DNA of 64,000 nt from NCBI RefSeq assembly GCF_001194135.2, contig NC_068986.1:69867175-69931174 (forward strand). Reading direction: 5' to 3'. Within the stretch, counting starts at the first letter, position 1; every line of letters begins with the position of its first letter. Positions 4,615 through 52,736 of the stretch are shown piece after piece. This stretch comes from Octopus bimaculoides (lineage: Eukaryota). The notes beneath the pieces are model-generated. The model did not search any database. It saw only the letters and a list, made by a program, of their open reading frames with translations, and was not told the origin of the DNA. The position numbers and the translations under genes are program-made.

Positions 4615-4768
4615 TTACGCTAACTGGAGCGTTGCAGTGTCCCAAAGATTTTACCCAGAAAACAACCGAATGTTTAGCAGATTATACAAGAGAATTGAAT
4701 AATGTTGAAAATAATGAGTACAAACTATTAACTGGAATTGAAGTTGAAGCTATCAGAGCATTTTGCAG
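4615..4768 (+). CDS. Exon A of secreted/GPI-type Cys-rich protein: (V)TLTGALQCPKDFTQKTTECLADYTRELNNVENNEYKLLTGIEVEAIRAFC(S)
   Basis: Seen: acceptor tttttttatttcag, donor AG|gtatat, 154 bp = 2+150+2, protein-like composition, phase match to the next exon. Confidence 0.85.
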
Positions 4769-5985
4769 GTATATATATATATATGTTAACAAATTTTTTC
4801 TCAGATACGAATTCGTTTCAATCTTGTATTTTAAGGCTGGTCTAAACATGTTTATCACACTTCTTAATACATTTTCTTAGAAGTCGTTTTGAATGAGTGT
4901 TGCTAATTCAAACTCAAGGATAGCTCTAGCATTTAATGATACAAAAATATAATAGACAAAAGACATCATCAATTTTTAAAAAGTCACAAGCTAGATGTAT
5001 TCATACATTAGAAACCAAAATAACGTCTTTTGTGTTCAAATTTTAAAAAAATGAATTTTATTCACATTTGGCAGTCTTATTTGAATTTATGTTTTAGTTG
5101 CTTCAGTGTAATTTTTTCATGTCGTATATACTAGATGAATTAAAAACCTAATCGGGTACAACTGAGAGAAGATTATATAACCAATCAAGAAATAACAAGA
5201 ATTTGTTATTAGTCTAATGTACAAAGTCTCTCCATATTAGATTAAGACAGTTCATCCCCACATATGAGTGTTAATTGAGATATTTAGATGACGGGAAAAA
5301 GTAGAGCTTTTCTAGAAATAGCAAACATTTACATCTTTTTCTTACTAGAGGAATGAATAGTATCCATGGTTTTTATAGGCCCTCCTAGATCAGTGAAACT
5401 GAAGTCATCAACGTTTATTTTGAACGTTTGCAAATCGAAAACTGCGGGAAAGATATAGGTGGAGAGGAAATTCCAGAGAGCCGGCATTGGGGAATGAAAC
5501 ACCGGACGTAGTGATTAGTGTTACGTCTGGTGGGGTTGAGGCACCAAAAAAAAAAATGAGAAGAAATGTGGTGGGTGGGCTGGTAATGCTTGAGTTAATT
5601 TGAGTCGAATCAGTTTTGAATAGCAAAGACTCTTATAATACTGGTAGAAAAGTAAGGGAGAGGAGGAAGCGTACCTCATCTCTTCACTTTTACCAGAGAA
5701 TGGAATATGCCTGAGGGTGACGACTTTGTGCTAATCAGCCGGATTATCCTATACTAGATGAGGTCTAGGATATACGCGTATGCGGCATCAACGGTGTTCT
5801 AGACGTAATATTTCATGGTAGGCCTCACCTAAGCTCACAAAGTAAAAGTATGACTAATTGTTGTAGTCTGAACGGTTTTTGTTTTGGGGGTTAAGGTTCC
5901 ATGACAATGGAGATAGATATATAGAAAGATACGTAGGTAAATGAGTTGATAGACAGATAGATAGATTGCTGGGTTCAAATATCAT

Positions 5986-6243
5986 TTGCAAACCTATGGA
6001 AAACGAACCTCCACCAACTATTCTGCCTATATGTCTGTCCACACTTTTGAATGCAGTGTATGCCAGAAGGTTTGCAAATCTAACAGAAGCCTCAAAAGAG
6101 ATTTTAGGATCCACAATGATCAGAACTTTTGTGCAGTTCTTGATGGTCCAAATCGGATAAGCAATCTATGTGGGTGTCTTGTCAGAACATTGTCTGGTTT
6201 AAAAAGCCATATCAGATGCCTTGATAGTTCTAAGGTGTAGGTA
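5986..6243 (+). mobile_element. Probable 3' end of a 5'-truncated non-LTR (RTE-like) retrotransposon with two decayed C2H2-like fingers
   Basis: Seen: FECSVCQKVCKSNRSLKRDFRIH and NLCGCLVRTLSGLKSHIRC, no splice signals, no TGEKP linkers. Family assignment is inference. Confidence 0.45.
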
Positions 6244-7313
6244 CAGGAGGTGGTCAAACTCTGCATAAGGAGTAAACAACCAGCACCATGTATATATATA
6301 TATATATATATATATATATATATATATNNNNNNNNNNNNNNNNNNNNNNNNNNNTGTGTGTGTGTGTGTGTGTGTGTGTGTGTGTGTGTGTGTGTGTGTG
6401 TGTGTGTGTAGGGTGTAAGGTGTGGTGTACAGATATTAAATATAGAGAAAAAAGGTCGCCAGCATTTTGGAATAAAATCTTTTTATTTTTAGTTATTAGC
6501 GCTTTCGTTCGTTTCTCGAACTTGTCAAATAGAATTTTGTGAATGTACAAACAGTTTGTTCATTTATATAAAAGAGATGTTTTTTTTTGTGGGGAAAGTT
6601 GTTTAGAAGAGGAGAACATTGTTTTCGTTTTCTTGGGTGAGGTTCCTCTATAATATTAAGTATTGTATGTGAACTGGCTGTAGTGTAATGTTGGCATCAA
6701 TATTTTTATGATATTTATAAGAGATCAAACAATATTACCAGGACAACATTAAATTAATATCTTGATAACTGTCTTGTCAGTAAACAAGCTTATTCATCTC
6801 AGACTTTTTCAACTTTTAACCTTTCGCTGTTGCTTAGATCAACATTTCATTTAATGGAATGAAATTACTATAACGAAAGAATAAAATTTACATAAATGAA
6901 AGTAATTCGTAGTAAAATTGAGTACACATGAAAGAAATGTCTGAAAATATAGAAGTGAAACAACCATGTCCTTTCTGAAAATATAGTACATGGTGCGTAC
7001 CATCAGTTGCTTGTAAAGTTTCAAAAAAATTTTTTTTTTCTTATTCATGAAGTTCTGTAATTCGAAGTCAGCGAAGATATTGAGCATTTCTCTTAATATT
7101 CTGGGAAGTAAATCCCTAGCCTGAAACCTTCCTCGATAAATACTCACCGCGTATCCAATTTTACAGATTGATGTTAAGGCACTAATAGCTATTGCGATCA
7201 GCATAATCATTAGAATCACATACTGTCTATTCAAATGCTTAGCTTTGTATCTCATTTAACAAATGTTAGTATGGTTTAGAAAAAAAGACATCCTGATTAA
7301 GTTAGTTTCTCAA

Positions 7314-51862: not shown

Positions 51863-52030
51863 CCTTTTCTACTCTAGGCACAAGGCCCGAAATTTTAGGG
51901 GAAAGGACCAGTCGATCAATATGGTACTTTATCAACCCCGAAAGAATGAAAGGCAAAGTGACCTCGGTGGAATTTGAACTCAGAACGTAAAAAAAGACGA
52001 AATACTGTTAAGCATTTCACCTGGCGTGCT
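51863..52030 (-). mobile_element. SINE family A, truncated
   Basis: Same core and ccttttctactctaggcacaaggcc tail. Confidence 0.85.
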
Positions 52031-52535
52031 ATAAAGTATGGCCACTCGTTACATAACCTTAAATGAAAAAATATGCCCCGTATTTTTTCACTGCTATATG
52101 TCGCAGTCAAACTTACTTACATTGGAAGATTGTGAATATGAACTGAAAGGAAGGCGATTTAGATGGCTAAATATTTGCATTTAAATGGTAATATATATTT
52201 CAAAGCACCCAGAATTACCTTTTACTCACCATGTTTATATTTAAAAGCGTGAATTTCTTCACAGGTGAAATAGATAAATTGTTTGTTTATTTTTTTATGT
52301 TGTTTGAATATGTTCCTACTAGATATACACATATACGCGTAACTGTTATATAAATATGAGTATATCTATTTACTTATTTGCATGAATGTGTGTGTGTGTG
52401 TGTGTGTGTGTGTGTGTATGTGTGTGTGTGTGTGTGTGTGTGTGTGCAAATGCATATCTAAATAGATACACCTTAAAATGTCAACTGAAGTTTATTTTCA
52501 AAATATTTACAACAAATTCTTGTCTTTATTTCCAG

Positions 52536-52736
52536 ACCACATCTACGCCAACAACAACTCGATCAACAACACATGTGCGAATCATCGTTCCCGCCGATCG
52601 CCGTGAGGAGACACACATTACCAACGGTTACGGTGTCACAATATTGCCGCCTCGCCTGTTTTATCTGACATTCTTCGCTGTTTCTTTCTATTATTTAATG
52701 ACATTCTTGTCTTCAGGCACACTAAAATGGACTTGA
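52536..52736 (+). CDS. Terminal exon E: Thr-rich stalk plus hydrophobic C-terminus (TTSTPTTTRSTT...TNGYGVTILPPRLFYLTFFAVSFYYLMTFLSSGTLKWT*)
   Basis: Seen: acceptor ttgtctttatttccag, phase 0 matching the exon D donor, stop TGA at 52734-36. Confidence 0.8.
   Translation, partial: TTSTPTTTRSTTHVRIIVPADRREETHITNGYGVTILPPRLFYLTFFAVSFYYLMTFLSSGTLKWT

Follow-up and report, generated by a model that had tools for sequence, protein, structure and literature searches.

LOC106868175 of Octopus bimaculoides encodes a probably glycosylphosphatidylinositol-anchored protein with a predicted all-helical 12-cysteine domain built from an internally duplicated module

A 64-kb window of the Octopus bimaculoides genome, from a 117-Mb scaffold (assembly GCA_001194135.2), carries five of the six coding exons (exons 2–6) of LOC106868175, whose product is annotated as "uncharacterized protein LOC106868175 [Octopus bimaculoides]" (XP_014768805.1, 287 residues); "the window" denotes this whole stretch throughout. 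The explanation that best fits the evidence overall, and that is favoured here with moderate confidence, is that these exons encode a helical domain, built from a duplicated module and displayed on the cell surface through a glycosylphosphatidylinositol (GPI) anchor, where it may serve as a membrane-tethered binding module. The identity and architecture of the product described below are very probably correct. The mature protein comprises one ~175-residue, 12-cysteine, all-alpha domain, followed by a threonine-rich stalk and a C-terminal hydrophobic segment, and lacks a cytoplasmic domain.

An original prediction, drawn from the DNA letters, had proposed an uncharacterised cell-surface protein and ranked it as a candidate for new biology. 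The cell-surface or secretory-type character agrees with the sequence features of the product, and the proviso that the protein might already be annotated as uncharacterised proves right, LOC106868175 being that entry. The rank as new biology does not stand: the product does not represent a new type of protein, is already present in RefSeq and UniProt, and has a DUF19 label. It instead adds a member to a superfamily that is known but obscure in function. What is new here is the exon anatomy, the proof of internal duplication, a helical model without a solved neighbour, the distribution of the GPI-type layout across molluscs and annelids, a weak, measured link to neuritin and the absence of a measurable link to RGM. 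As a single uncharacterised gene showing no unusual genomic behaviour, LOC106868175 is of modest importance in itself. If the reading is true, it represents a family of helical, disulfide-locked surface proteins, conserved in molluscs and annelids and probably GPI-anchored, that falls below threshold in every Pfam model.

Identity and exon anatomy of LOC106868175

Splicing of the five plus-strand exons listed in Table 1 yields residues 34–287 of XP_014768805.1 with 100% identity over 254 residues. All five exons are preceded by a polypyrimidine tract and AG, and all but the last are followed by a GT donor; the predicted exons, their four junctions and the peptides quoted from them are thus recovered with canonical splice sites and exact identity to RefSeq. 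Specifically, the plus strand encodes SYQKGMKCIEDF at 27741–27776 and DAGKLVEYLL at 40003–40032. The proposed start at 4615 is a real exon boundary, but the exon that it opens is internal and entered in phase 1, and the gene itself begins further upstream. The gene extends over 334 kb, and the 33-residue first coding exon (MATFSYLCRRLALDTKGLLITTLRTYYILGIFT; MATFSY...) lies outside the window, so that subtraction from the gene range gives a first intron of ~286 kb. The window itself is AT-rich (GC content ~0.30–0.41) and contains seven runs of N.

Table 1. Coding exons of LOC106868175 in the window and assembly gaps within its introns
Feature	Positions	Strand	Boundaries and phase	Encoded elements or location
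Coding exon 2 (first in window)	4615..4768	+	acceptor ttatttcag, donor gtatat; in phase 1, out phase 2	end of putative signal peptide (VTLTGALQ); module 1 Cys1–Cys3: C42 (4638–4640), C53 (4671–4673), C84 (4764–4766)
Coding exon 3	27740..27879	+	acceptor ttttttacag, donor gtaagt; out phase 1	module 1 Cys4–Cys6 (C93, C101, C124); N-L-S sequon; start of inter-module linker (DDRLYE)
Coding exon 4	37885..38014	+	acceptor cttattccag, donor gtaaga; out phase 2	linker (KYARYQT); module 2 Cys1'–Cys3' (C139, C150, C174), ending right after Cys3'
Coding exon 5	39945..40083	+	acceptor ctggttctag, donor gtaagt; out phase 0	module 2 Cys4'–Cys6' (C183, C192, C214) with conserved helix CxKDAGKLVEYLLTPMIMKS
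Last coding exon	52536..52736	+	acceptor tttatttccag; TGA stop 52734–52736	Thr-rich stalk TTSTPTTTRSTT; VRIIVxAD segment (cephalopod-conserved); candidate omega site; hydrophobic tail; 8-residue end
Assembly gaps, intronic	6328–6354 and 21747–21756			intron between first two in-window exons
Assembly gaps, intronic	31363–31452 and 36416–36425			intron between second and third in-window exons

Internal duplication of a six-cysteine module

The spliced product contains two six-cysteine modules with spacings of 10, 30, 8, 7 and 22 residues in module 1 and of 10, 23, 8, 8 and 21 residues in module 2, separated by a 14-residue linker; these values reproduce the predicted spacings exactly. The other features read from the DNA are likewise found in the protein, namely a single N-x-S/T sequon (N112-L-S, 27819–27827), a Thr-rich stalk at residues 221–233 and a hydrophobic tail at residues 262–279. 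A hydrophobic N-terminus, YYILGIFTVTLTGALQ, precedes the first cysteine as judged by residue hydrophobicity, and 45 of 55 relatives show the same arrangement. These relatives, matched at expect values (E) below 1e-10 in an exhaustive HMMER search over 1.84 billion representatives, form the family alignment. Across the 55 sequences, 11 of the cysteines never vary, and more than 90% of the sequences have the twelfth.

Analysis of this alignment reveals that the module 1 and module 2 columns match each other in hhalign with 95.7% probability (E = 1.1e-8), the reversed control giving 1%. Additionally, both modules start in phase 1, and both are split by a phase-2 intron directly after their third cysteine (TGC AG/gt). 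This correspondence of intron place and phase is the pattern expected from tandem duplication of a two-exon unit. Together, profile comparison and gene structure identify internal tandem duplication of a two-exon six-cysteine module as the origin of the 12-cysteine domain.

Comparison with the O. vulgaris orthologue (CAI9723731.1, 94% identical) locates 17 amino-acid differences. Of these, 15 fall in the 12-cysteine domain (residues 59–215), while the signal peptide and the 72-residue stretch of stalk plus tail have one each. Between these two Octopus species the stalk and anchor signal have thus changed less than the folded domain, an unusual pattern, and the VRIIVxAD segment is also kept in an orthologue of only 56% identity. 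Residue 136 is Tyr in O. bimaculoides (window positions 37896–37898) and Cys in the O. vulgaris entry. Either the O. vulgaris linker between the modules has a thirteenth cysteine with no partner, or the sequencing or the annotation is at fault here.

Predicted fold of the cysteine-rich domain

The full-length AlphaFold2 model, built with the family alignment, is all-helical with a mean predicted local distance difference test (pLDDT) score of 83, and most of the Cys-rich domain lies in blocks scoring 88–98. A model of the domain alone (residues 40–218) reaches a pLDDT of 91.2 and a predicted template-modelling score (pTM) of 0.84, with helices throughout. Each module contributes approximately three helices alongside its six cysteines, the first helix being kinked at Cys2, and the segments that the original prediction had singled out as helix-like lie inside predicted helices spanning residues 77–100 and 194–207. 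Collectively, the models confidently predict that the Cys-rich region of the LOC106868175 product forms one all-helical domain.

Foldseek searches of the PDB return best E values of 1.4 for the full-length model and 1.9 for the domain model, with template-modelling (TM) scores of 0.39 or lower; a search of the domain model against the viral models of BFVD gives a best E of 0.42, again with TM scores of 0.39 or lower. The structural check proposed with the original prediction is in this respect divided: the fold is all-helical at high confidence, but it has no solved structural match. The whole fold appears to be represented by no solved structure, so that an experimental structure would be new, and in the absence of a structural neighbour the fold provides no functional clue. 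At the sequence level, DPP4 emerges as the best PDB match to the single protein, and is rejected at a non-significant E of 0.25.

A conserved family in molluscs and annelids

The exhaustive search recovers at least 74 clusters at E<1e-3, including the 55 used in the alignment, and relatives in other species reach E = 4.7e-79 to 1e-30, far beyond chance. A word-indexed protein search, by comparison, finds the octopus cluster only, and five proteins when a profile is used; the family is visible only through exhaustive searching. Named members are found in a chiton (Liolophura), in bivalves (Solemya, Crassostrea, Pinctada, Ylistrum, Argopecten and Mya), in abalones (Haliotis), in three Octopus species and in the annelids Owenia and Lamellibrachia, every one of them labelled "uncharacterized" or "hypothetical", while many of the unnamed relatives are transcript-type contigs of 1–2 kb. 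The suggested search for tandem paralogues and molluscan orthologues has a mixed outcome, with molluscan and annelid relatives present but no paralogue in the window. In addition to the cysteines, several positions are nearly invariant: E78 and R81 within the motif GxDVExLRxFC, Y133 within the YExYA linker, and L203 within the helix CGxEAxxLVxxLVKPMVR. Literature searches on the gene and protein accessions found no papers.

Relationship to DUF19, DUF1397 and CPG4

The best Pfam match of the octopus protein is DUF19 (PF01579, InterPro name 'T20D4.11-like'), a secreted 12-cysteine family described chiefly from nematodes. Residues 42–201 align with positions 1–143 of the 157-position profile, spanning both modules, while module 2 alone aligns with positions 76–146, in the second half. 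This end-to-end alignment indicates that the two modules together correspond to one DUF19-type 12-cysteine domain. The scores are 14.0 bits for the O. bimaculoides protein (E = 0.046), 21.0 for O. vulgaris and 22.9 for O. sinensis, all below the gathering cut-off of 23.2; among the relatives, 23 of 55 match at E<0.01, the best at 9.1e-5. The near misses fall in a consistent register, so that the protein is best seen as distantly related to the family and not as a member in the strict sense. UniRef and UniProt give the name 'DUF19 domain-containing protein' to A0A0L8HXR4, an older, truncated model of the protein. The predicted assignment of two six-cysteine modules to a neuritin/RGM-N/DUF19 class is accordingly only partly upheld: the modules are homologous to each other and DUF19 is their best Pfam match, but they are not two independent DUF19 domains, the neuritin link is suggestive only, and the RGM-N link lacks statistical support.

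Two further families are approached by single modules. Module 2 aligns with the last third of the DUF1397 model (PF07165; 16.7 bits, E = 0.0049, cut-off 25.7), a family matched by 16 of 55 relatives at E<0.01, including two at E<=1e-5. Module 1 aligns with the first half of the 94-position CPG4 model (PF15481; 16.4 bits, E = 0.014, cut-off 32.7), which four of 55 relatives match at E<0.01, the best being an annelid sequence at 26.4 bits (E = 1e-5). No saposin, Ly6/uPAR or GFR-alpha/GAS1-type Pfam family is matched even at E<=10, and assignments of these types are rejected.

Structurally and biologically, the resemblances are uneven. With DUF19 the protein shares a similar domain size (~150–175 residues), 12 conserved cysteines and the end-to-end alignment, and it is probably secretory as well; unlike the nematode DUF19 proteins, which are secreted and 140–220 residues long (PMC3534327), it also has a stalk rich in Thr and a tail of the GPI type, falls in a separate lophotrochozoan clade and scores below the cut-off. 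An oyster proteomics table (PMC10058639) likewise lists a DUF19 protein. With DUF1397 it shares a probable extracellular setting and the alignment of module 2, whereas the DUF1397 proteins of arthropods are described as soluble components of the haemolymph and the octopus score lies under the cut-off. The DUF1397 literature found presents an insect 27-kDa haemolymph protein and lists further members in centipede venom and in the mosquito peritrophic matrix. C. elegans CPG4 resembles the octopus protein in the alignment of module 1, but the latter offers no evidence of glycosaminoglycan attachment sites. Searches of the literature on DUF19, DUF1397 and the Pfam accessions return lists and proteomics tables, and a functional or structural study was not found among them. 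By its family, the octopus protein appears to represent a lophotrochozoan (mollusc and annelid) branch in the twilight zone of DUF19, DUF1397 and CPG4.

Comparison with neuritin and RGM

The human NRN1 query used for comparison matches Pfam NRN1 at E = 2e-39 and database neuritins with 97–100% identity, and its cysteine spacing of 9, 24, 8, 7 and 27 residues is the one given in the original prediction. This six-cysteine framework (C-x9-C-x24-C-x8-C-x7-C-x27-C) is present in both octopus modules, which keep the order of the cysteines and the central x8/x7(8) core and differ in loop lengths. Aligned by hhalign with a 71-sequence neuritin profile, module 1 reaches 33% probability, module 2 60% and the pooled modules 64% (E = 6.4e-5), with the cysteines in register and reversed controls at 2–3%. 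The octopus protein itself gives no match to Pfam NRN1 (PF15056; cut-off 27 bits) at E<=10, and one of the 55 relatives matches that model with 20.2 bits (E = 6.9e-4). Human neuritin in turn scores on the first half of DUF19 (profile positions 10–83 of 157, E = 0.0088), a link of which no discussion was found in the literature searched. The named neuritin matches are all from vertebrates. As in neuritin, a signal peptide, here putative, precedes six-cysteine sequence and a GPI signal, here likewise putative; unlike neuritin, in which a single module is directly followed by the GPI signal, the octopus protein has two modules and a Thr-rich stalk. On these profile comparisons, homology of the octopus modules to neuritin is suggestive only.

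For RGM, the resemblance lies in the pattern of cysteines. The RGMB N-domain chain in the PDB reads C-x22-C-x8-C-x7-C-x21-C, which bears out the RGM spacing given in the original prediction and comes close to module 2 (23, 8, 8, 21). RGM proteins are GPI-anchored, and their N-domain (structures 4UHZ, 4UI0, 6Z3H and 6Z3J) clamps BMP/GDF ligands. That of RGMB consists of three helices with three disulfides and binds the finger region of GDF5 (PMC7354924). Against RGM_N (PF06535) the octopus protein scores 10 bits (E = 1.1) with a cut-off of 24.2, and one of 55 relatives reaches E = 6.3e-3. A PDB search with the full-length family profile places the RGMB N-domain at the top with E = 0.31. This match is nevertheless not taken as evidence of homology: it disappears with the domain-only profile, indicating that the Thr-rich stalk had contributed to it, and hhalign against the single RGMB sequence gives 1% or less. 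RGM is also not among the 50 best Foldseek matches of the domain model in the PDB, and the protein shows no RGM_C match, no GDPH autocleavage motif and no further domain after the 12-cysteine domain. The statistics do not support a robust RGM-N homology.

The position of the protein between DUF19, DUF1397 and CPG4, together with its weak, consistent similarity to neuritin, could, if the reading is true, be of use in bringing these families together and in finding where neuritin originated. A more far-reaching proposal is that one ancient metazoan six-cysteine, three-helix, three-disulfide module was ancestral to the lophotrochozoan family, DUF19, DUF1397, CPG4 and neuritin, possibly also to the RGM N-domain, and that the octopus protein would be a GPI-anchored, two-module invertebrate counterpart of neuritin, serving the nervous system as a tethered ligand or co-receptor. 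This proposal is rather improbable; if true, neuritin would gain an invertebrate lineage, and DUF19 and DUF1397 would gain their first functional handle.

Membrane anchoring and proposed mechanism

The C-terminus of the protein runs from N-G-Y-G (residues 251–254; 52623–52634) through the spacer VTILPPR to 18 hydrophobic residues, LFYLTFFAVSFYYLMTFL (residues 262–279; 52656–52709), and ends with SSGTLKWT. A hydrophobic C-terminal segment is present in 45 of 55 relatives, ending 12 or fewer residues from the C-terminus in 40, and is typically preceded by small residues (NGxG, NGS or GAS). The motif NG[YS]GV is conserved, the closest orthologue having N-G-S-G-V where the octopus protein has N-G-Y-G. 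The sequence thus shows the GPI-class layout, in which a putative N-terminal signal is joined, at the other end of the chain, by an omega site of small residues, a short spacer and a hydrophobic stretch with no cytoplasmic domain, as judged by rule of thumb only. On this basis, the LOC106868175 product is probably a GPI-anchored cell-surface protein.

In the proposed mechanism, the hydrophobic N-terminus would serve as the entry signal for the secretory pathway, six disulfides formed by the 12 cysteines would lock the helices, and the Thr-rich stalk would be O-glycosylated. A GPI anchor would then replace the tail near the conserved N-G-x-G and present the helical domain on the extracellular side of the plasma membrane. 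By analogy, the rigid helical domain might then work as a membrane-tethered binding module, that is, as a ligand or co-receptor that engages a protein partner outside the cell. The ligand-type action of GPI-anchored neuritin, along with the RGM N-domain, provides the analogue for this last step, which is put forward as a tentative possibility.

Several observations weigh against the explanation as a whole. The analogy leans on families whose homology is unproven, neuritin reaching 33–64% and RGM-N lacking significance, and members of the wider group, namely nematode DUF19 and the insect DUF1397 haemolymph proteins, are soluble. The 8-residue end after the hydrophobic stretch would also fit a short-tailed type I membrane protein, the GPI call being made by simple sequence rules. 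In addition, the octopus protein reaches the curated Pfam cut-off of no family, none of the solved structures and viral models searched by Foldseek resembles the domain, and lookup of the exact O. bimaculoides protein among contigs returns the genome scaffold only and no transcript contig.

An unlikely alternative to a binding module is a carrier of hydrophobic ligands, in which a lipid or another small hydrophobic molecule sits inside the disulfide-locked bundle of helices and the anchor merely holds the protein at the membrane, or the protein is shed into the haemolymph. Many small all-alpha, disulfide-rich extracellular proteins act in this way, and the 16 relatives matching DUF1397, a family of insect 27-kDa haemolymph glycoproteins, do so with a best E of 3.2e-7, although lipid binding by DUF1397 or DUF19 was not found in the literature searched. 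The non-significant Foldseek matches include fatty-acid-binding helical domains (Penicillium marneffei MP1; E = 1.9, TM 0.34–0.38), but these lie at chance level, and the combination of stalk and anchor is commoner among receptors and ligands of the cell surface.

It is improbable that the protein is instead an extracellular-matrix or mucin-like glycoprotein, or a proteoglycan core, carrying glycans on its Thr/Ser stalk and using the Cys-rich domain for structure or cross-linking in a surface coat. C. elegans CPG-4 is a chondroitin proteoglycan core protein, and both the CPG4 match of module 1 and that of the annelid relative point in this direction, yet every one of these scores stays under its cut-off. 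The older, 197-residue model also matches the sialomucin family MGC-24 weakly (E = 0.0029), but it does so through the stalk and the match is compositional. Moreover, the stalk is short, with ~13 Thr/Ser-rich residues, and carries no Ser-Gly glycosaminoglycan attachment motifs.

A low probability is likewise assigned to an innate-immune or defence role, as effector or recognition protein, resembling the infection-induced part of the nematode DUF19 family. That family numbers 51 genes in C. elegans, 42 with a signal peptide and 14 up-regulated on infection (PMC3534327), and DUF1397 haemolymph proteins recur in insect infection proteomics; the octopus protein, in contrast, belongs to a gene that is conserved in molluscs and annelids in one or two copies rather than to an expanded family of fast turnover, and no paralogues lie within the window. 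The concentration of 15 of the 17 substitutions between O. bimaculoides and O. vulgaris in the Cys-rich domain is compatible with a fast-evolving binding surface, but this pattern consists of 17 changes only.

Integrity of the gene model

The closest non-Octopus relative provides an independent view of the gene model. This 56%-identical orthologue is encoded uninterrupted on a 1,145-nt contig from a sequencing run (Logan ERR12374249), which is therefore cDNA. Its product is colinear with the octopus protein across junctions 84/85, 131/132, 174/175 and 221/222 with no indel at any junction, the sole indels being three residues inside one exon and three residues in the Thr run. This colinearity at all four junctions indicates that no coding exon is hidden in the four assembly gaps, none of which touches the coding sequence. 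The junction between exons 1 and 2 is also backed by the orthologue cDNA (...YYLLLLLT/VTLTAAS against ...YYILGIFT/VTLTGAL in the octopus protein), and the O. vulgaris orthologue has the same first exon. Searching the window with the protein and its orthologues by tblastn finds the five exons only, with no tandem paralogue and no extra exon. The LOC106868175 gene model is real, conserved and already catalogued in RefSeq and UniProt.

It is very improbable that the gene is unexpressed, is mis-modelled through the joining by Gnomon of conserved exons to a wrong, distant first exon, or is a decaying pseudogene: the 334-kb gene range with its ~286-kb first intron, the lack on record of any transcript-derived copy of the exact protein and the different, transposon-derived first exon of the O. 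sinensis model would fit such an error, but the reading frame is intact through all exons, 12 of 12 cysteines are conserved, the O. vulgaris protein is 94% identical with a shared first exon, and the orthologue cDNA is fully colinear and carries the same N-terminal junction (YY.L...T/VTLT).

The O. sinensis entry, XP_029638123.1, begins with 63 residues that match window positions 2745–2941 in tblastn and has no signal peptide. These positions belong to a degenerate mariner/Mos1-type transposase remnant at 2186–2941 on the plus strand (Transposase_1, E = 1.1e-5), ~1.7 kb ahead of the first exon in the window, and the O. sinensis model is probably wrong in its first exon because of this match.

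Other features of the window

A second mariner-type transposase remnant with broken frames occupies 23015–24013 on the minus strand (Transposase_1, E = 4.1e-15; weak HTH_48), in the intron between 4768 and 27740. The GC-richest block of the window (0.41), at ~46600–48720, lies in the last intron and carries several open reading frames of 110–160 residues on both strands (for example, 48235–48717, minus). The two minus-strand frames scanned there, 47883–48233 and 48238–48717, give no Pfam match, and the block may be an unclassified repeat or a transposon remnant. Rfam and tRNA scans of the window return no matches. Long microsatellites are found at 17807–18394, with (TATA)n over ~590 bp, at 44106–44248, with (AGAC)n, and at 60231–60410, with (ATAT)n, and they give rise to spurious long open reading frames such as the 'DRQT' repeat at 44062–44358.

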